A stretch of DNA of 33,209 nt, taken from assembly GCA_013115145.1 (NCBI GenBank), contig JAAPAO010000398.1, positions 1 to 33,209 of the forward strand. Direction: 5' to 3'. The notes below the pieces were generated by a model that ran no database searches, had not been told where the DNA came from, and saw only the letters and a program-made list of their open reading frames with translations. The DNA is from Perkinsus chesapeaki ATCC PRA-425. Lineage: Eukaryota; Protista; Perkinsozoa. The first letter of the stretch is position 1, and each line of letters starts with the position of its first letter. The translations under genes were made by a program, and so were the position numbers. Below are positions 2,077-33,056 of the stretch, one piece after another.

Positions 2077-2738
2077 GTTGTCGTGTCGTACGTTTTTTTG
2101 GAATAAGTTGTTTCCTGACGTTTGTCCCGTCTGTGAGTTTCGTTACAGGGTAATGCTTGTAGACATAGAAGAACACTTAATGTTCCGGGAATGAGCAATT
2201 GCTCTCACCTCTCAGGAACAATCTTCGACATTCGACGAACACATATCCTCGAGACTGTATCAGCGGGGTTCATTTTGCATCGTCAAGATATCTCTCGTAT
2301 TAATGGAAATTTGGCCTCTACATTGGAATCATCACCAATCCAGCTTCGTTTACAGCAGTTTCTATACCTTATCAATCTAGTCAACATCGGTATAAGTGCT
2401 AGCAACTTGCCTTCCTTGAAAGTCATCCTCGCCTTCAGTAATCTTTATTATCAATGCCTCGCAACAACTTTGGTAAGAGCCGTGGATCCCCTAGTCGTCG
2501 TGGCGGCGGAGGCGGCAACAACGCAGTCCAGCAACATTATTATCATGAAGTAACAGTTACTGATAAAGTCAGTCCTCCGACCAAAGGTGTGCTTGGGTGG
2601 ATGATGCCGGGGGGAAAGAGCTAGCTTCGAGCGCTAGGTGAAAAGTTAAAGTAGTGTAATGTGCCTGGGTGATGAGCGTGCGTGGTGGTGGTTCAACCTG
2701 GAGCAATCTCAGCTGCTAAAAATTATTGGTGCGGGGAG

Positions 2739-4889: not shown

Positions 4890-5222
4890 TGGTTATTTTA
4901 TTCAACATTGATAACTCCTTAACTGCTAGTGCTGCCCTATTGATGAGGGGAAAGGGTTGAGGCGCTCAAAAGTGGCTACGCTTTCTTCATCTACTGTTAT
5001 CTGAGTTGTGGAGGCCAATACGTGTATATATATTATTATGCTCTGTATATCATTCACACGATCACTGTATTATATATAGTATTAATATATAATTAATTAT
5101 TAATATACTGTATTTGATACTATTGCTCTATTGATATCCTATTTTAACTTTCCACAGAGCCCACCAAAAGTGATGGCTTATATATTTCAGTGTTTTACTG
5201 GTGTCCCTCTAACACCATTCCT

Positions 5223-8200
5223 ATGAACGTCGCTCAGTTAGATCAGCAGATAGCTCGGCTTAGGAAGTGCGAGACATTACCGGCGAATCAGGTTAAAGGT
5301 GGTATGGGGATGGAGGGCTCGAGGCTGCTTCGATAGAGTATCCCACACCGGGCTTTCGAACTGCGCATCGAGTCGATATAGCTCCGATCCGATCGTCTTG
5401 GGTGACATATGCTTACTATCGGATTGTGATCTATAGCCGCTGGTTCGGGGAGGAATGGTGGCGAGAGTATACTTGCTCAAACTCGTCGCGAGCAATATTA
5501 TTGTATAACCCCCGGAAGGGTGTTATCGGTGATAGGTGCAGGGTAGATTATCACAAGGCAAAAGCTTGAAGGAGTCTCTTGTCAAAAGTGTAATGATTAT
5601 TACACCTAGCAAGAGACAATAGAGATGTAGCGCAAGCTGGATTTAGGGGACAAGCGAGGCGATTAGGTTTATCTCGCGGGGAGGCGTGTGTGAAAGTGTA
5701 GACTTGGAATGTTACTTGAGTTTTCACTGGCGCTTGGAAATGTTGCCGATGGACCGGCAATAGTAAAGACCTGCTGACAGCGTTCCGTCAGAGCTATGCT
5801 CGCTGTGCCGTGATATCTTGATAGAGGAGGATAATATACAACGAGTTGAATCGCCAGTTGTTATTTGTGGAGATATCCATGGGCAGTTTTACGATCTTAT
5901 GGAGCTCTTCAAGGTACTACAGGAGGAAGCGGCCGCCGCGGCGACGGTGTCGTATTCTCACAGCTTGTCATTTTTGCTGTGATGATGAAATGGTGTAGGC
6001 GATGCTTTAATGGTGAATATACGTATATTTCTGATGGATAATTTATAATAGCTATGAAATGCCGAATTTCTTGTGGCGTATTTTTTATAAAAAGTTTTAT
6101 TGTTATTTGTATGTATACAGTTTAGTCCAACGCCGATCCGAATGCGGTATCGATTGAATAGAAGAATAAGATAGCATTGGATCGGACATTCCTAGGCTTT
6201 CGCAGAGCTACACGACTCATCTCAGCGTGATCCCTTACTTGTGGGAAGTTCAAGTATTCAAAAATGGGTGGTGGTAATATATATTAAATTTTTTGGGGAA
6301 ATTATTTCCATGAATTTCTCAATTTTCGGTGAGCATAGATATATCGCTTTTGAGCTTGAACGGATTCTTGTTGATTTGTGCGCCGCCGCTGCCCGGGTCG
6401 AGACACACGTTATCTAACTTTTCAGGTTGGTGGGGACTGCCCGGAGACAAACTATCTATTTCTGGGCGATTATGTGGATAGAGGCTTCTATTCGGTCGAG
6501 ACACTTCTACTGTTGATTGCTCTGAAAGTAAGTATAAGCTTGTGCAACGTGCGACGTGGCACTCGAAAATAGTGGTGAAGCTGCGGCGGCTTCTTGCGAG
6601 ATTTGTGAGGGTCTGGGCGTTGATTACTTATTGGACATGCATTTTTTCAAAATATTGTTGTTTATTGCATATTGATTTTGGTCCTCAGAACTCCTTGAAG
6701 CTTGAAATCGCAAAGTAGGGAACATCGTAGTGGCAGTTTAGGACTGTCGAAGTCGCGCTTAGCATAGACGTATCTACCTATCTTTGGCAAATTTCTTAAA
6801 TCTGTTGAGGGTCTGAGTAATAATAGGTGCATCGATCCTCTTATAGATGCGCATCTGTTGGTTATGACTAGTAGATTATTATAAGTATCAACACAATACT
6901 TCAGGAGATAGGATCTCGATTATACATCGAGTGAGTCAAACATGACGACTTTAGCCTAGCTTTAGCTACAGCACAGAATCATCTTTGCTGGGGCGCGATC
7001 CACGGCAACAGTTATACGTACGGCTGGATGCAGTGACATAGAATTATTGAAATCTCACACAGTTGTAACGTGTGACACATCACATTTTGAGAATGTGTCA
7101 TCAAATGGGAATTGAAAATAGTACACTCAATCGATCAACTATGACTAAGCATTGATATCTTGGCGAGCCAAGTTTTCAGCGCTCGTAGAAGTGAACTGGA
7201 CAGATGTGATGGATGCTGAAATTGTAGTGTTAGTTTTACTTTGAGAAGGTGCGCTTGGCTTCTCCTGCTGCTGTTGCTGCGGAGTTTCGATCAGCTTGGA
7301 GCTACCGCATTGGTAATGTTGATAGTTGTAATGAGAAGATGGTCATTAGTGTTAAATGCATTACCAGTCATATAGAGAGAGGGAGTCGGTGGGCACCTGT
7401 AACTTGTTCGAGAATAGTAGTAGACAAATAAATGAAGCTTTAATGTCTTGTAGATAGACTTTAGAATAGAGCTTGCTTGAGGCAGCAGCAGCAGCAGCAT
7501 CGCTGAAATGGTGAGTGTTATTTTGTCAGGTAAGGTATCCCGACCGAATAACATTGATACGAGGAAATCACGAGTCGAGACAGATTACGCAAGTGTATGG
7601 TTTCTACGACGAGTGTGTCCGCAAATTCGGGAACGTAAGATCGCCTAATCACTGGCAGGTCGTTGAGCGTTTCACAGGTTAATGTTTGGAGGTGCTGCAC
7701 GGATTTGTTCGACTACATGGCCCTGAGCGCGATTATCGACAATAAGGTTTTCGCAGTCCATGGAGGACTGAGCCCTGCTTTGTGAGCTGATAGAGGGGTT
7801 TGTGGTGAGCTATAGTGAGTGGCAGGCATACGATGGATGAGATTAGATTGATTGATAGAAAACAGGAGGTTCCGCATGAAGGGCCGATGTCGGATATCAT
7901 GTGGTAAGCTACAGGCTTACCGTTTACCGACTAGCATGTCAGTGTATCTTAGGTCGGATCCAGATGACATCAGTGGATGGGCCGAATCTCCTCGTGGAGC
8001 TGGATGGTTGTTTGGCGGAGATGTTGTGAAGTAAGTCTAAGATGCTAGTGTCTAGAGTGAGAATCTCTTGTTTACATCGATGCTTATATTCGCAGTCTTC
8101 GTGGTTTACTCTATCTCCGCTTGCTAAGAGAGTGTTCGCTAGCAGGCCTTTTCCAACGGTCTGCAGCTTGTGTTAGGCAACACGTGGAAGCGGAACACTT

Positions 8201-9650: not shown

Positions 9651-10058
9651 TTAGCAATAATAGGGTTCACCCTCACACTCATCATCAGTTGGGGCGAAAC
9701 AAAGACTTCCATCATCCTTCTTAATAATACCAAAACAGACCTGAGGATCCTGCCAGGTCTTGCAGTAAGAACCCCACTTGGAGTCACGACACTGAGGCAT
9801 GCCATTGCAGATATCTTGACAACTAGGTTGGGGCTCGGGACAGGCAACCGGCTCGAGAGTGTAGTCATCACAGGTATCCTGCTCAGTGGGTTGGAAGCAA
9901 TAACCATCATCTTGGTGATAAAGACCAAAGCAGACTCCATTACCCTTACAATAAGAACCATACTTAGAATCAGCACAGGCCGAGTGACTGTCACAAATAT
10001 CCTGACAATACTCGGCAACGGCAACAGTGAAGGCAACAGCAGCGATGGTGAACTTCAT
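9651..10058 (-). CDS. Secreted cysteine-rich protein, copy 1 (135 aa, two 8-Cys domains), intronless
   Basis: Signal peptide MKFTIAAVAFTVAVA, then a tandem domain C-x3-C-x5-C-xDSK(Y/W)GSYCK...VCFG...DDG..CF.PT...C...P..C. Polypyrimidine tract plus CAG acceptor lies just upstream. Confidence 0.9.
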   Translation of the reverse strand: MKFTIAAVAFTVAVAEYCQDICDSHSACADSKYGSYCKGNGVCFGLYHQDDGYCFQPTEQDTCDDYTLEPVACPEPQPSCQDICNGMPQCRDSKWGSYCKTWQDPQVCFGIIKKDDGSLCFAPTDDECEGEPYYC

Positions 10059-10191
10059 GGAGAAGAGATAATTAATCAACTGAGAAACAGGAAATAAGCG
10101 TACGGAAGTTTTCCACCAAGGAAGATGGTCATATATAATTGATAAATGTTACTATAGCTGAAGTACCAGAAGTGAAGCACCTTTTGAACTA

Positions 10192-12415: not shown

Positions 12416-12548
12416 TAGTTCAAAAGGTGCTTCACTTCTGGTACTTCAGCTATAGTAACATTTATCAATTATATATGACCATCTTCCTTGGTGGAAAACT
12501 TCCGTACGCTTATTTCCTGTTTCTCAGTTGATTAATTATCTCTTCTCC

Positions 12549-12956
12549 ATGAAGTTCACCATCGCTGCTGTTGCCTTCACTGTTGCCGTTGCCGAGTATT
12601 GTCAGGATATTTGTGACAGTCACTCGGCCTGTGCTGATTCTAAGTATGGTTCTTATTGTAAGGGTAATGGAGTCTGCTTTGGTCTCTATCATAAAGATGA
12701 TGGTTATTGCTTCCAACCCACTGAGCAGGATACCTGTGATGACTACACTCTCGAGCCGGTTGCCTGTCCCGAGCCTCAACCTAGTTGTCAAGATATCTGC
12801 AATGGCATGCCTCAGTGTCGTGACTCCAAGTGGGGTTCTTACTGCAAGACCTGGCAGGATCCTCAGGTCTGTTTTGGTATTATTAAGAAGGATGATGGAA
12901 GTCTTTGTTTCGCTCCAACTGATGATGAGTGTGAGGGTGAACCCTATTATTGCTAA
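12549..12956 (+). CDS. Secreted cysteine-rich protein, copy 2 (135 aa; one residue, K vs Q, differs from copy 1)
   Basis: Same features as copy 1, with the acceptor-like sequence cttatttcctgtttctcag upstream of the ATG. Confidence 0.9.
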   Translation: MKFTIAAVAFTVAVAEYCQDICDSHSACADSKYGSYCKGNGVCFGLYHKDDGYCFQPTEQDTCDDYTLEPVACPEPQPSCQDICNGMPQCRDSKWGSYCKTWQDPQVCFGIIKKDDGSLCFAPTDDECEGEPYYC

Positions 12957-13336: not shown

Positions 13337-14830
13337 TCAATGCCTAGTCTCTGGCATTTTAGGGTCAACCCAGTCCGGGACGTAGCATGGCGAGTAAGGC
13401 TTGTCTTTGGTGTAGGCATGAGGGTCGCAGTTCTTCTTGCGGGTCTGAGAGAGTTCATTATGCAATTTGGTTGAAGCACCGCAGCCGCTACCTGCGGAGG
13501 AGTCTCCCCAACTGACTGCTTTGATCGGAGTTGACCGGATTTGTTCTAAAAATGTAAGCATTCTCTGCGACACAAAATATGTCCCATTCTGTAACACTCA
13601 CCTTGATGGCCAAGAAGGACTCATTCTCACTCGGAGCTGTCACGGCACCGACCGCCTGAGCAGCCTGAGCGACCTCGGCAACCTTATCAACTGGTGGCGC
13701 GGGCTCTTCAGGCAACTTGGTAGCGTAGCGTCCAACCTGATAACAACACAAACTTCAACCTTCAAAGAGCTTGGGAGTTCACCTCGTCCCAAAGTTCAGA
13801 TCCAGAAGTTCGGTGAGAGATATCAAGTTGAACTTTCTGAGAAAGAAGGCAAATGTCCAGCGCGGTTGGGAGGAGCCTTACCGTGGCCTTTGGAGCCGTT
13901 TGTTGAACAACACCACCGCCCTCAGCCTCTACTGGGGCAGGAGCCTCAGGCTCGAAGTTCTGACAAAGGCAACAACATCGTAGTAGCCTATGGGGAGCCT
14001 ATCCGAGCTCACCTCGGAAGCCTCAATGGATTGGATCACATCATCCGTATTAACGGGACTCTGGCTCACTTCACGGATGGCTTGGATCGACTGGCCATGC
14101 TGAAAAGGGAATCAGAAGAGCGGCGATTATTCGGTGAAGTTCCTACATCACATCCGAGCTCCTTCTTGGCCTCCGCGACGAGAGCATCATCCGAAGTCTG
14201 CAGCTGCTGGCGGAGGTCATCGACTCTAATATTACACAAAGCTTCACAAATGATGCACTTGTGCACTCACTCGGGGGAGTCGAAAAGGCCCTGTGTGGTC
14301 TGCTGCACCGGCACCTTTCCAGTGACGTACTTTGAAGAATCAAGCTTGACTGGGAACCTGGCAAGTCCCGCCATCATCGACGGGTAGGCCGACGCTCGAG
14401 CATCCTTACTGTTTCTCATCCCATTCGGGACGATACGCGTGGAACTTTGGCTCGGTCGGCTTCAGTTCTCGAGGACGATTCACCTTGTTCGTCAGCGACT
14501 CAAAATCACCACCTTGCGGCTCCAACAAAGGCTGATCTTTGTTCCACTGAGACAAGCAAGTCACGCGCCGCGAAACTACGCGGCAACGTTACTGTAGCGC
14601 CCATGTCGAGGGCCTGATAGTTGGGCTCGTACTCGGTATTGAGGGGTTCTTCCTCAGTTAGCTCCACTGGTCGCTCGACCTCCACCGATTCGGTCTGAAC
14701 AGGCGAGGCCGGTTGGATGATGATGAGCTAACCCTGTAATTCTGCTCACTGGCTCTTCGTGTGTCCTAATCCTCAAGGCGTTGGCAAGTAGAGACAATGC
14801 CCCGACAAGTGCGATGGTGGTGCGAATCAT
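13337..14830 (-). CDS. Secreted acidic/Pro-rich protein, paralog B, 11 exons
   Basis: Signal peptide MIRTTIALVGALSLLANA and ten short GT-AG introns, all in frame. Ends with KKNCDPHAYTKDKPYSPCYVPDWVDPKMPETRH*. Confidence 0.85.
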
Positions 14831-14935
14831 TATTAATAGGAATTTAGTAGTAGCTGTTGGAAGGCAATCTCAGAGGGTAGAAAACACAAACCTTAAATGT
14901 GGACACCGCACACCATGCCGTAAACGCGGCGGCTT

Positions 14936-16867
14936 TCACCAGCTTTGGATCACTTTGTGACCGGAATGGCGAAGGAAGGATCTGACCAAGTCAGCCAACA
15001 GCAGTCAGGCCGAGGGAGCGACGCCCTGAGCGACTTACGTTTTGACCGGCAAGGCTGCGGCAGCGGCCGCAGCTGAGCCCTCCACCACAGTGGCTGCTGG
15101 AGTGTCCGCTGTTGTGCTGCCCTCTCCTCCTTCAGACGTGCTGGGGGTCGACACTTCACTCTCGGGTGAGGATGCGGCCGCGGCGCCACTGGCAGGACGT
15201 AACGAGTGAGCAATAAAACGGATTATGTTAGTAAACTCGGACTCACCTAGTTGCTGGCTCTCCATTTTTCATTTTCTCAGCGGTTGGATCTTCCCAAATG
15301 GGTCTGTAGGGGCAGGGATGATACTCCTCGCGAGATGTCGAGTCGTAACCTTCTTCGCAAGGCTGAACAGGAATGAGATATGAAATAGCTAAGCTGGTCG
15401 AGCACGTTGATTGACATCTAAAGGTTGCGAGTTCCAATCCCTCACCTCACCTTTTCTTTCTCGCCTTCTATGGCCTTTTCCTCACTGGCAGCCGCGGCCT
15501 CCTGAGCTTCACCAGGGCTCGAGGAGCTCCTTTCCAGGAGCGATTCCGAGGAAGTCTCCGAGGTTGGAGGTTTCTCGATCGTTGCAGCCTCTTCGACGTT
15601 GTCCACGTGCCTGCTCCCCGCCGCAGCTACTGACCCACGAGGCAGGTGACTATGAGCCTTACTCTTTTAGCTTCCCTTCTCTTATGTCCTGAACTCGCTT
15701 AATCAGCCTCTCTCGGTGAGCCTCGGAGTCGACCTTCTCGCGTTCCTTAATGTTCATTCTAGCACTCTTTGCATGTTGCAATGCCTGACAACGAAACAGA
15801 CATAACCCCACTGGAAGGTGGTCTCGGGTTCGATCCCGGCGGCTGCGTCCACTTACTGCATTAAAAATGTCTCCTCCAGTCTCTCGATTGACATCCAGCT
15901 TGACAGGCTAACAAAGCAGCAGCAATCGTCAATTACACCGCATCACTCCAGCATACCTCTGGTTCCTTCTCAGCCTCTTCGTCCGCCGGCATCTCAGTGG
16001 GCACAGCTTGGGCGGGCTCGGGAGTAGATACCTGCATGTCACGACGGTCGTGGGTTCGAACCCCGGTGACGGCAACTTACTCCTGGCGCCTCGACCTTAT
16101 CAACTGCAGGATCCTCCTGTATGGGGTTCTCGGCGATCGCTTTGGCCTCCTTCATCGCAGGACTTTTCTGGAATCAGAAACTTGCACCCAGGTTCGATCC
16201 GCGGCTGGTAACCTCTAGCTCTTTCTCTGCCTTCGCCGCAGCCGGTGATTGATCCGGTGGTCCGTTGGCTTCTTCTTCAAGATCGTCGAACCTAACACAG
16301 AGTACACTGCCTTCCATTCAAGGAGGAGACTCACGCTTGACCAGGGTCGCTGAGGACCTTCACAGCCTCGGCCTTTACTGGGACAGCACCCGAGCAGGTC
16401 GGTCGCCGAAAGTATTTGGTCACCCTAAGACGATAGCCGAAATCAATGTTATACATAAACCTGATTCGTCTACTCTTTAGCGTCGATACTGTAGTCACGA
16501 ATCGCGAACTTCGGTTCGGGTTCCTTTGGTTTTGGCGGCACAGCCTCGGAGCCGACCATGACGCTGAAGTCGGCTCCTTTGTTCTCCAACTCAGGAAGGT
16601 CATCAGTAATCTCCTGAAGATAGCACGCATGCACAAACAAAGACCGCGAATCAACCTCAAGAGTATCTTTACCTTCATTTTTTCGACCTTCTCAGGTTTC
16701 GGTTTATCCGCTGTCGTTTCGAGGACATCTCCAGGATCATCGACCTTGTGTTCTGGTAAATCGTCCTTTACGAATTCCGCGTTAGTATCCGGTGACTCCC
16801 TTATAACGCCCCTCACTAGAGTTGCTATGATCGTCCATATTAAAGTCGTTCGGTAGAGATATGTCAT
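14936..16867 (-). CDS. Secreted acidic/Pro-rich protein, paralog A, 12 exons
   Basis: Signal peptide MTYLYRTTLIWTIIATLVRG and eleven 43-88 nt GT-AG introns in frame. Shares GADF/GGDF..EPKF, DDL, KEL, V(K/Q)LD and C..PCxx.PxWxDP blocks with paralog B. Confidence 0.83.
15379..15451 (+). pseudogene. Degenerate full-length tRNA-like sequence, antisense inside intron 9 of paralog A
   Basis: TAGCTAAGCTGGTCGAGCA (A box and D arm), then ATCTAAAGGTT, then GAGTTCCAATCC (B box), at exact canonical tRNA spacing with no indels. Acceptor and anticodon stems do not pair. Confidence 0.65.
15819..15851 (+). pseudogene. tRNA 3'-half remnant (Gly-like), antisense inside intron 7 of paralog A
   Basis: GGTC-TCGGG-TTCGAT-CCCGG-CGGCTGCG-TCCA: variable loop, T arm and acceptor 3' strand. 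Confidence 0.55.
16045..16074 (+). pseudogene. tRNA 3'-half remnant, antisense inside intron 5 of paralog A
   Basis: CGGTC-GTGGG-TTCGAAC-CCCGG-TGACGGC-A: 4 of 5 T-stem pairs, canonical spacing, directly followed by the antisense donor ACTTAC. Confidence 0.6.
16186..16213 (+). pseudogene. tRNA 3'-half remnant (Gly-like), antisense inside intron 4 of paralog A
   Basis: CCAGG-TTCGATC-CGCGG-CTGGTAA-CC resembles a tRNA-Gly 3' end of the type CCGGG-TTCGATT-CCCGG-CTGGTGC-A (recalled sequence, about 19/24 positions). Confidence 0.45.
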
Positions 16868-17137: not shown

Positions 17138-19731
17138 ATGAACCTTCCTTGTTTACTTATCATCCCTTACTTGCTTGTAGGGGCAACATCACCGAGCTTC
17201 GTGAAAATAAAAAGTCTCGAGGAGTTCAATAAGGCTATTCATGATAATGATTTCGTTGTTGCTGTTTTTGGATCAAAGTGGTGTGGTCGGCTTTGCGTCT
17301 GGGCAGCTCGAGCGGTAAGCATATAGGGACCGGATGGATTATCACTCAAACGAATCACAGATGATCACTCACTGGATGATCAAACAAAAAACCTTACCAC
17401 TGAATTTTCCTGCAGTGCAAGTGACGGTGTATTTCGGGAGCGGTAAGATGTTATTTACGCCCACTGCACGAAACGAGTTCCGGTGTTTTGCCCATTGTAC
17501 AGCTCGCTCACCGATGAGTGCTGTTGGTGTTTGTAGTTGACCTGGTCGCAGGTTCTTGAAACGGCTAAAATCCTACCGAGTGACCTTAGTGGCGTGCATG
17601 GTCAGGATGAAGCCGACGAATTGGTGATACCGATTTTTCCGACGATCCGATTGAATTCGGGGTATACCTTCCCTCAGGAAGCTTTAGACCATCCTGACAA
17701 CGGCCTTCTCCTGTTGAAGGTCGATGGTGGTCGAAAGGTCAATGGGGAGATCCTGGCTCAAGAGAGTGTGCTGGGATACCCTGCGATACACTTATATGTC
17801 AGGGGCTACAAGCATGTGTAGGCCGAGGTTCGATCCCCAGGCCATCCATTTTTACTCCAATAGGTTCGAGATGGCGTACCGTACGCCAGAGCTGCTTCAT
17901 CCGTGGATCGTGTTTATTATCTCCCACAGTCCGATTCGGCTGAGTGCCTCCCACGGATCCGCTTGCGCGGGGATCTTGGACCTTCCCGTCGGGCTCGTGG
18001 CGCTCCTTCGTGCGCCAGAGGGGACCCTTTGGAATGTTATCAACAATTTGGGGAGTAAGTTACATTTGTGATAGCTCCCCCAGAGCGGTCTGATTCGCGG
18101 GCACGCGTGACCTTGCCAGCTTACGCCGATTCTCGCATATATTTCGCAATCGACCGCAATCGAACGAAGGATGAGATGGTCTACTGCACCTCGGAGGGGC
18201 TCACATTACCGTTCCCCTCACTGAATGCTGATGACGCTCCCGAAGATGTCCGGAAGGCTGCGGGGATGTTTTTGGACCGCCATACGACCAAGAGGGTAGC
18301 TGGTCAATTTATATGGCTGAGTCTACCAACGACTTAGGTTACTCTGCTCGATCCACAGCGGGTTCATCGCTACGTGTCCGGTGGATTCCCGATGGTTGTA
18401 TTTGTTCTGGTCGCAGTGGACTTAAAGGGGGCGCGAGAGAGACTGACAGAATTGGAGCCATCTGCGAATCAATTATCCTCAACGGATTTGTGGAATATAT
18501 GGATCCCAGCACTACCGGAAATTGCGAATGTCATGGACGAGTTGACCGAGTCGTCATGGATACATCTTCGGAAGCGTAAGGTCGTGACCTCCACATATTT
18601 TCTTCGGTGTATGTGTCTCGTCATCTTCTATTGCCTGTTCCGGCGGTCTACATCTTCCTCTGCTTTCGAAGCTGCTGTTGCCCATACATACCACGACTCA
18701 ACCGCCTAGCCAGTGACGTTCGACAAAACGACAAGACTGACGAATGGTTTCTAAAATCCGTTTAAAATCGTCGCATTTTCATTTTGAGATGTTCTCTATC
18801 GCAGACTTTGACATCGACGGAGCTGCCGACATCCTCACTGTTGTCGTTCCCCATGTCCCCAGCTCAGACATCGGTCTCTGGCGCTCGCCAGGCAATGGTC
18901 CCAGCCAAGATCAACTATCATCGGTAAGTTGGAGGAGGCCACCGACTTCCACGGGGACTTGTCCTTCTCAGGTCGCCGAGGCGTGGGAGCTTTTGCACGG
19001 AGTGCAAGTGATGCTTAACCAGTGGTTCGGCTTGGATACAACAAACGGCAGATCGAAGGTCGGAAAAACTGACACGATTCTCACAGGCCGATTTGCAGCA
19101 GCTCCTCGCCTACGAGCCTTTCGAGGAGCGAAAATATATTTTGGAGCTGGACGGTGGTGACCTGCCGGAAGCCATTGGGAGTTTTGTTGCTGATGTGGTC
19201 CGTGGGGGTATCGAACCGAGGCGAATCGCTCAAACGCATGAGAGTGCGTCTCGGGCGGTGCAAGAGGTAGGCGGACGCGAATAGGTTTCAGAATCTCTAA
19301 AGTGGAATATCTTGCCAAGCTACGGCGCCTCTGAATTGCAGATACACCCCTCCATCGAGGCGATGACTACGGACACTATACCGAGATTTATGAAGTCTCC
19401 GATGACTCCAGTCCAGTTGCATCTACTTCTCGTTTATGCGCCGTGGTGCGTGCACTGTGTAACATTCATGTGGCATGTTCTGCGGCCTCTCGCCGAGAAC
19501 AGTATCAGCGAGCAGCTCGAAATTTTTGTCATCGACGGCACGGCGAATGAGCTGCCACGAACGCTACGCGACCATGTGGAGGGCTATCCGACGTTGTTGA
19601 TGCACGATGGTGATGTGATGTCAAGCTATCCCATGTACGACACTGCGAATATGATGCACGTGTTGGAATGGATTAAGGAACACTTTAACATGGCTGTCGT
19701 TTCGGTGGAATCTGATCGGGAAGAACTATGA
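17138..19731 (+). CDS. Protein disulfide isomerase/thioredoxin-family ER protein, multi-exon
   Basis: Signal peptide, then FGSKWCG, LKVDG...GYPAIHLY and a b'-like KYILELD...IGSFVADVVRG. The last domain has YAPWCVHC...IDGTANEL...EGYPTL, and the protein ends in REEL*. The first-domain splice path is unresolved. Confidence 0.82.
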
Positions 19732-31831: not shown

Positions 31832-33056
31832 CTAACGACGACCACCCTTTCTCTTCTTGCCACCTTGAATGTTGAGAAGCTCCACGTCGAAGACGAGGTC
31901 AGAATTCGGGGGAATGGCAGGAGGGGCACCACCGCGGCCATAAGCCAGATGAGCAGGAATGAATAGTTTACGGACCTGAAACAGATGAGCATGCGTGCAG
32001 GATTCGGTGAAACCGTCATTATTGTTACCTCCCCAACTTGCATGCCCTTCACTGACATATCCCAACCCTTGATGACCTCGCCCATTCCAACACGGAAGTC
32101 AATGGTCCCCTTGTCGAACTGCTTCCCGTTCTTAGCCAACCGACCGGCGTACTTCACCTATATATATAACTTTCCATCGAAGGGTCCCCTAACTTATCTC
32201 TCACCTTGGCCGTCTTTCCAGCTGGGCAAGGAATACCACCATGGCCAGCACGGATGACCTCGTACTTGAGGCCACCAGGCAAAGTTTTAGTGCGAACCGC
32301 GGCCTCCTGCTCCTTCTTTTGCTCCTGTTTCTTGGAAGGCTCCTCCTTCTTCTCGATGGTCTTCTGGACCTCCTTCATCTCAGCCTTCTTTTCGGACTTC
32401 TTGGCGGGGCTCTTCTGTTGAGGCTTCTTCTCAGCCTTCTTGGGGCCTAAAATCACCAAGTGAGGGGAACGAACCAACGACCTGCCGATAGCGAGCGTCA
32501 CCCTTTAACCTCCAAACTGTGATGACCTCTTACTACCAGCAATAGGCTCCTCAGTGATCTCCTCGAACTTCCCATCATCCTCTTCCTCCTCTTCCTCCTC
32601 ATCAACATCAGACTCCTACATTGATAACCGTCCATCCCCCCAGCCAACACGCTCCTACTACTACCATAGCAACAGGAATAGGGCCATCGAAGTCCTCCTC
32701 CTCATCATCTATGTCACTCTCATCCTCCTCCATTCCCTCTGGAAGGCCGATGTTGCCGGATATAGTAATCTCACCACCTGAACTCCATCAAGTTCGACAG
32801 AGTCCCACGCGTCTTGACTACCCTCCGCGGTGAAAACGACATCCTCCTCGAAGTCGAGGCCGAGCTGTACGTTGGGCTGGGCATCGCTGAGGCGAGCTAT
32901 CATGAACTTATCCTCGCCATCGGTTGACACGAAAAGCTTGGCGTGTTTCTGGGAGCCCGAAAGGACAACATTGAGGAGCTCCAAAGTGGCGCCTTCAAGA
33001 GACTCGGAGCTTATCTCTAGCGGCTTGCCAGGGACGATCTTCTCAGCCCAGAACAT
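31832..33056 (-). CDS. Nucleoplasmin-like (NPL) domain FKBP peptidyl-prolyl isomerase (Fpr3/Fpr4/FKBP53-type histone chaperone)
   Basis: N-terminus [12 protein letters not shown]..., an acidic tract and a Lys-rich linker precede the FKBP core YAGRL...GEVIKGWD...GMQVGE|[13 protein letters not shown]...[14 protein letters not shown]. The tail is basic. Confidence 0.9.

Follow-up and report, generated by a model that had tools for sequence, protein, structure and literature searches.

The window analysed here is the entire 33,209-bp contig JAAPAO010000398.1 of the Perkinsus chesapeaki assembly GCA_013115145.1. We describe transfer RNA (tRNA)-gene relics that nearly fill short spliceosomal introns of FOL47_006921, the host gene of most of them, and that recur in introns of other genes in the window. 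Threading the GenBank protein of FOL47_006921 (P0121, to which no Pfam family matched) through the DNA yields 21 GT..AG introns, rather than the 11 counted by a first-pass annotation of the same DNA, which had reported antisense tRNA remnants in four of them. The six intervals that it singled out are GenBank introns 4, 5, 6, 7, 9 and 11, five of them exactly and the last shifted by one base (14982-15038 instead of 14983-15039). A search for RNA runs listed just two small ones under the species label; they contained none of the words sampled from the stretch and gave no reads on it. Our intron calls are based on the GenBank model and on comparison with P. olseni. The ortholog there, P0126 (744 aa), was taken from loci L004 and L005 and is likewise interrupted by 21 introns. 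Exon lengths are equal in P0121 and P0126 across at least the first ten exons while intron lengths differ (45 versus 274, 49 versus 50, 72 versus 54 and 88 versus 81 nt in P. chesapeaki and P. olseni, respectively), by amounts that, save in the third pair, are not multiples of three, and this supports the annotated introns. The positions of the relic-bearing introns are common to both species.

Since Rfam multiplies its E-values by 4227 families, we built our own covariance model (CM) and profile hidden Markov model (HMM) from an alignment of 21 class-I tRNA genes taken from the annotated Escherichia coli K-12 record, in which G53, T54, T55, C56, A58 and C61 are invariant. The HMM, searched with nhmmer, uses sequence only and is suited to relics with decayed stems. 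The host gene and its candidate introns are:

13337-16867, minus strand: host gene FOL47_006921; its product P0121 is a Perkinsus-specific protein of 737 aa whose N terminus looks secreted, and 21 GT..AG introns are annotated.
15363-15450, minus strand: intron 9 (88 nt), which carries on the plus strand a nearly whole decayed class-I tRNA; nhmmer 14.4 bits at profile positions 6-65.
15785-15856, minus strand: intron 7 (72 nt), antisense relic at 15817-15851 from the variable loop GGTC to T73 plus CCA, with a B box at 15827-15836; nhmmer 11.7 bits, CM 10.7 bits.
15908-15956, minus strand: intron 6 (49 nt), doubtful relic; a CCA adjoins the 5′ splice site, and GTCAATT, which resembles a T loop, is canonically spaced from that CCA.
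16032-16080, minus strand: intron 5 (49 nt), antisense relic at 16045-16074 with a B box at 16053-16062; nhmmer 11.6 bits, CM 9.4 bits.
16168-16212, minus strand: intron 4 (45 nt), weak antisense relic with an exact 10-mer B box at 16191-16200; profile score 2.0-2.4 bits.

The B-box motifs lie on the plus strand, antisense to the gene, at every position where the earlier reading had placed them: GGTTCGATCC at 15827-15836 and 16191-16200, GGTTCGAACC at 16053-16062 and GTTCCAATCC at 15431-15440. The consensus GGTTCGANNC occurs six times in the window against 1.06 expected, a count reached in none of 100 shuffles. Three of these sites fall inside 374 bp and a fourth starts at 17827. The earlier reading had estimated about one chance match to GGTTCGAnnC per window and had counted three within 400 bp, all intronic.

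Introns 9, 7 and 5 are the three best nhmmer matches in the window, with an E-value of 7.5e-4 for intron 9, and are followed in fourth place by an intron of a neighbouring thioredoxin-like gene at 6.3 bits. Across 200 dinucleotide-preserving shuffles of the window the best score was 11.4 bits, so that none attained 11.6, and across 300 shuffled sets of 22 introns the maximum was 7.9 bits, with none at 11. The remaining 17 of the 22 real introns gave no nhmmer match. The CM, run unfiltered on both strands of the window, likewise placed intron 9 first (12.7 bits at model positions 8-65), intron 7 second and intron 5 fourth; the match in third place is mostly exonic and probably due to chance. 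Introns 9, 7 and 5 thus resemble a generic tRNA profile far above the shuffled background. The shuffled-intron comparison that the first-pass annotation had named as its test therefore comes out in favour of these three introns, which exceed every shuffle, while intron 4 scores weakly and introns 6 and 11 receive no profile match. Intron 6, one of the two weaker candidates proposed earlier, has neither a profile nor a CM match on the plus strand and shows only the T-loop-like GTCAATT and the CCA.

The anatomy of the relics follows that of a tRNA gene read on the plus strand. The most complete is intron 9, in which a D arm containing an A-box-like element (15386-15404, TAGCTAAGCTGG...GAGC) is separated by a canonical 23-nt spacing, with an anticodon region of canonical length, from the T stem, the T loop TTCCAAT lying at 15432-15438. 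Position 57 of its B box is occupied by C, and the sequence at 15444-15450, its acceptor 3′ strand, is complementary to the 5′ splice site GTGAGGT. In intron 5, GGTC is followed by a T arm with four of five pairs, the perfect-palindrome B box GGTTCGAACC, an acceptor strand and discriminator A, and then directly by the complement of GTAAGT. The CCA of intron 7 adjoins the 5′ splice site. Intron 4 begins with the base that corresponds to position 73 of the implied tRNA, such that the 5′ splice site GTTACC falls inside the acceptor strand; here we call a relic from the 10-mer, from its distance to the end of the intron and from the decayed relic in the P. olseni intron. A geometry of T loop followed by 5, 7 and 1 nt and ending at the splice site, CCA or a T-run is shared by introns 5 and 7 and the neighbour's intron. 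An alignment with E. coli tRNA-Phe keeps relics from either species in register over the span between the variable loop and C72-A73. A B box with G53, T54, T55, C56, A58 and C61 stands without an A box in introns 4, 5 and 7, in the neighbour's intron, and in P. olseni intron 7 and the P. olseni intron of the neighbour gene, while the A-box-like D arm is retained in intron 9. The antisense relics have their 3′ end 0-6 nt from the 5′ splice site and take up almost the entire intron. A repeat search found only a 14-18-nt tRNA core in common between relics, and their acceptor strands differ with no repeat family beyond the core, which bears out the earlier suggestion of several source tRNAs rather than one repeat.

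Immediately after the intron-9 relic, CTTTTCTTTC (15451-15462, plus strand) has the appearance of a possible RNA polymerase III (Pol III) terminator. It lies inside a Glu/Lys-rich coding exon (GAGAAAGAAAAG on the sense strand) and is probably a coincidence.

Relics in the sense orientation occur elsewhere in the window, one of them in the thioredoxin-like gene, which lies on the plus strand and is divergently transcribed from FOL47_006921:

17818-17863, plus strand: intron (46 nt) of the thioredoxin-like neighbour gene, sense relic with a B box at 17827-17836, then 5 + 7 nt, A73 and TTTTT at 17849-17853; nhmmer 6.3 bits.
32447-32536, minus strand: putative 90-nt intron of another gene, weak sense relic at 32462-32488, then TTTT beside the 3′ splice site; nhmmer 5.2 bits.

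The borders of the second of these introns were drawn from GT..AG alone. These sense relics in other genes show that orientation relative to the host gene is not fixed. We also considered a strand bias, as five relics lie on the plus strand over two divergent genes, and discarded it, since p is only about 1/16 and the sixth relic is on the minus strand.

None of the relics is a working tRNA gene. ARAGORN reports no tRNA gene in the window, the P. olseni loci or the P. marinus locus, and our own CM reaches no more than 12.7 bits for any relic intron. At most three of five T-stem pairs are canonical in most relics, and on neither strand does a relic intron fold better than its shuffles (z from -1.46 to +1.86). 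What had been described as a T arm is consequently correct as sequence, but its stems are mostly non-complementary and form no hairpin. The broken stems led us to reject a permuted or split tRNA gene. An LTR (long terminal repeat) primer-binding site was rejected because the complementarity runs past position 58 and there is no LTR.

We then compared the 21 orthologous intron pairs and the neighbour's intron between P. chesapeaki and P. olseni, scoring each local alignment against 500 shuffles. Eighteen of the 22 pairs are indistinguishable from shuffles, indicating that intron sequence is saturated between the two species. Against this background, intron 7 matches P. olseni intron 7 at 17 positions of one 18-nt block (z 9.1, 0/500 shuffles). 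The block takes in the variable loop, the 5′ half of the T stem and the T loop, whereas just two of the following 11 bases are the same. The neighbour's intron has 22 identical columns among 25 aligned (z 6.8, 0/500 shuffles), and the other introns of that gene show no similarity to P. olseni. The two conserved blocks overlap solely on the B-box core GTTCGAT(C/A)CC, and the six bases invariant in the E. coli alignment are intact in all four sequences, that is, in both species at both relics. The stems show no covariation between species. On this two-species comparison, the B-box core appears selectively retained in both relics, where it is probably still in use.

The other relics fare differently. 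P. olseni intron 4 holds a decayed relic in which T54 is changed (CM 6.2 bits), and no P. olseni counterpart of introns 5 and 9 was detected in the same-numbered introns. Intron 11 is marginally conserved (z 2.9). The presence of relics in both species means that the relic class is older than the P. chesapeaki / P. olseni split. A second P. olseni haplotype, L003, shares 94% identity with L005 and differs from it in intron 7 by a single change that falls beyond the core, which is too little variation to use. In P. marinus the locus is represented by a 1.4-kb contig that covers just the 3′ portion of the gene; for the relic-bearing part, a profile search with the corresponding protein segment returned P. 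olseni alone and no P. marinus ortholog. A search for syntenic Perkinsus loci with an exon of ribosomal protein uS5 returned no Perkinsus protein. The examined loci contain no Perkinsus tRNA genes, so the relics cannot be assigned to particular Perkinsus tRNA families.

Intron 1, at 16614-16672 on the minus strand (5196-5281 of P. olseni L005), shares the motif GTGCATGCGTG(C/T)TA between the species (z 4.0, 4/500 shuffles), which is unrelated to tRNA. P. olseni intron 1 also contains a weak antisense T-loop-like GGTGATCGAACCAC that P. chesapeaki intron 1 lacks.

The relics are of tRNA-gene ancestry, have lost their structure, are old and occur in both orientations. The profile scores, the canonically spaced D and T arms of intron 9 and the T loop + 5 + 7 + 1 geometry support their tRNA origin. 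In both sense relics a T-run directly follows the acceptor end, which suggests that what was copied was a tRNA gene together with its Pol III terminator and not a mature tRNA. We favour with moderate confidence an account in which the intron inserts are ancient relics of several different tRNA genes, some with a B box under selection, most plausibly as sites for TFIIIC only. The relics would have been copied as DNA from several tRNA genes, and deletion pressure in a genome with introns of about 45-50 nt may have trimmed each insert to the splice signals and whatever part was selected; because such a deletion bias would strip an insert to splice signals and core, it would explain why a relic fills its intron with its 3′ end 0-6 nt from the 5′ splice site. 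The retained core would act as a double-stranded DNA site, as suggested by its occurrence in both orientations relative to the host gene and by the loss of stem pairing. Its most likely reader would be TFIIIC bound to a B box without an A box, as at extra-TFIIIC sites, where it would serve chromatin or local RNA polymerase II (Pol II) regulation and not tRNA production. The unconstrained relics, namely intron 9, intron 5 and P. olseni intron 4, would simply be decaying. A broader proposal, which we regard as doubtful, is that in Perkinsus tRNA-gene fragments are a recurrent raw material of spliceosomal introns, the insert providing or adjoining the signals for splicing (an antisense insert would place its acceptor end at the 5′ splice site, a sense insert would offer its T-run as pyrimidine tract) and its B box being kept as an intragenic docking site for TFIIIC, to give "Pol III-marked" introns with a chromatin or Pol II role.

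Three origins had been offered in the first-pass annotation. A tRNA cluster hosted antisense in the introns and then trimmed finds no direct support, as the neighbouring gene holds one relic in the sense orientation and the relics are separated by exons of conserved coding sequence. Repeated insertion of tRNA cDNAs would account for the CCA in intron 7 and perhaps in intron 6, but not for the T-runs of both sense relics or for P. olseni intron 7, which is without the CCA. The retention of B boxes without A boxes fits best, since the conserved part common to two relics is the B-box core with the invariant T-loop bases while stems are not kept and nothing folds, although the conservation extends to just two of the five relics.

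Several observations weigh against the account that we favour. The CCA in P. chesapeaki intron 7 does not fit copying from a gene. In the neighbour's intron conservation extends beyond the B box, from the T loop via the acceptor strand to the T-run. Just two of the five P. chesapeaki relics are conserved in P. olseni, so any function must be dispensable or turning over, and the test of conservation at this locus covers the only two species that are comparable there. The CM E-values are individually marginal (0.11-1.1), and Rfam gave no match at the gathering score and no tRNA at E <= 10 on either 4 kb or 456 nt. Single B boxes can also arise by chance: a perfect one, GGTTCGAATCC, stands at 2577-2593 (plus strand) of P. 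olseni L005 in a coding exon of the thioredoxin-like gene, where the other strand codes LDSNRT.

Neutral debris is a credible if improbable explanation, by which pieces of tRNA genes entered as insertions or as filler during break repair and have been decaying since without a function, the conserved cores reflecting occasional gene conversion from the many tRNA genes of the genome or a locally low mutation rate. It would account for the three of five relics without a P. olseni counterpart (in P. olseni intron 4, T54 is lost), for the decayed stems and the lack of a fold, and the hundreds of tRNA gene copies in P. marinus could serve as conversion donors. Neutral decay should, however, treat the intron 7 core and the 11 bases that follow it alike, and they are 17/18 and 2/11 identical, respectively; conversion tracts shorter than 20 nt and limited to the T loop are unlikely, and 18 of 22 intron pairs have been fully randomised. 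We consider chance matches in GC-rich introns, with no tRNA ancestry at all, scarcely credible. The marginal CM E-values, the silence of Rfam and the perfect B box in a P. olseni exon would suit this view, but three matches exceed all 200 shuffled windows and all 300 shuffled intron sets, the D arm and T arm of intron 9 are exactly spaced, and the top matches are all intronic.

The remaining alternatives assign the motif to RNA. A role in pre-mRNA is unlikely; the near-palindromic GGWUCGAWCC, which reads similarly in both orientations, would be an intronic splicing signal of very short introns, as the perfect palindrome of intron 5 and the position of the motif 10-20 nt downstream of the 5′ splice site in most relics might suggest. 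Yet 17 of the 21 introns of FOL47_006921 lack the motif and are presumably spliced, and both the 32.4-kb relic and P. olseni intron 1 carry it at a long distance from the 5′ splice site. Introns 4 and 5 offer CTRAY-like candidate branch sites at other positions, on which ground we rejected the motif as the branch site itself. We know of no RNA-binding factor for GGWUCGAWCC. Slightly less likely still is that the relics remain small Pol III genes, from which short RNAs resembling tRNAs or tRNA halves would be produced inside the introns. Intron 9 does retain A-box-like and B-box-like elements with a TTTT after them on the plus strand, and T-runs end the sense relics. This reading is opposed by the silence of ARAGORN and Rfam, by broken stems with fold energies no better than those of shuffles, and by the loss of the 5′ two-thirds, including the A box, from most relics.

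TFIIIC-only occupancy, as we propose it, has precedents. According to two published accounts, TFIIIC binds B boxes without A boxes at ETC (extra-TFIIIC) and COC (chromosome-organizing clamp) sites and at the B boxes of short interspersed elements (SINEs) in mammalian introns (PMC3395662, PMC3744447). Like the relics, budding-yeast ETC sites and fission-yeast COC sites have a B-box consensus without a working A box or tRNA. They are short linear DNA motifs conserved between species, as the B-box core is in intron 7 and the neighbour's intron of the two Perkinsus species compared, and in both cases action through TFIIIC without Pol III is presumed. ETC and COC sites are few and mostly intergenic, whereas the relics sit in tiny spliceosomal introns clustered in single genes and betray their descent from tRNA genes by a variable loop, acceptor strand and T-run. 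SINEs derived from tRNA or 7SL, such as MIR, B2 and Alu, similarly place Pol III boxes of tRNA ancestry in introns of Pol II genes, with an effect of TFIIIC on the host proposed in the same literature (PMC3744447). They are high-copy retroposon families, however, with a 5′ tRNA-like head, a body and a tail, while the relics are single, unrelated 3′ parts of different tRNA genes that fill nearly a whole intron and have no body, tail or repeat family; they usually consist of the 3′ third and end at the acceptor end, CCA or T-run, unlike a tRNA-derived SINE.

Introners offer a likeness of another kind, as there too the inserted DNA is a whole short intron and could be a source of intron gain (PMC9860276, PMC3609843). 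Introners come in many near-identical copies, often with terminal inverted repeats or target-site duplications, whereas the relic introns have no family similarity, are old and are common to P. olseni; only the 14-18-nt core is shared, the acceptor strands differ, and the flanks show the ordinary AG|G exon junction alone. Nested tRNA genes and tRNA pseudogenes also put tRNA-gene-derived sequence into introns in either orientation, but nested genes are intact and lie in long introns, while a relic is usually the last third of a tRNA gene, fills a 45-90-nt intron and has a 3′ end that coincides with a splice signal.

The first-pass annotation knew of no description of such an arrangement, and a literature search on Perkinsus introns, tRNA and TFIIIC agrees: a full-text search found no account of tRNA-derived introns or intronic B boxes in the genus, and neither a survey of Perkinsus introns (PMC3101222) nor a paper on Amoebophrya introners (PMC7789003) contains anything on tRNA-derived introns. 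Kojima and Jurka reported over 500 gene copies for five types of tRNA in P. marinus and Dada transposons that target tRNA genes; this suggests unusual tRNA-gene dynamics in the lineage, although introns were not addressed (PMC3706591).

The relics bear on the origin of new introns and on the role of extra-TFIIIC sites. Should the B boxes be bound, TFIIIC-only sites could be systematically embedded in introns of protein-coding genes, and, if our account is true, tRNA genes as well as transposons could furnish intron sequence. P. marinus can be cultured and transfected, and three diverged Perkinsus genomes exist. If neutral, the relics would still be a useful marker of unusual tRNA-gene mobility, fitting the reported amplification (PMC3706591).

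Other features of the window were also noted. Annotated intron 12 of FOL47_006921 (14695-14953, minus strand; 259 nt) includes a stretch conserved with P. olseni over about 33 of 38 columns, beside which an open reading frame (ORF) encodes a hydrophobic segment present in the P. olseni protein; the P. chesapeaki GenBank model probably omits a small exon within this region. The exon at 14412-14546 (minus strand) encodes a 45-aa motif (WNKDQPLLEPQGGDFESLTN...) that matches 16 separate stretches of the 4271-aa protein P0123 and is therefore part of a repeated domain of unknown function. Two near-identical ORFs of 142 aa, both rich in cysteine and with N termini that look secreted, form an inverted pair at 9651-10079 (minus strand) and 12528-12956 (plus strand).

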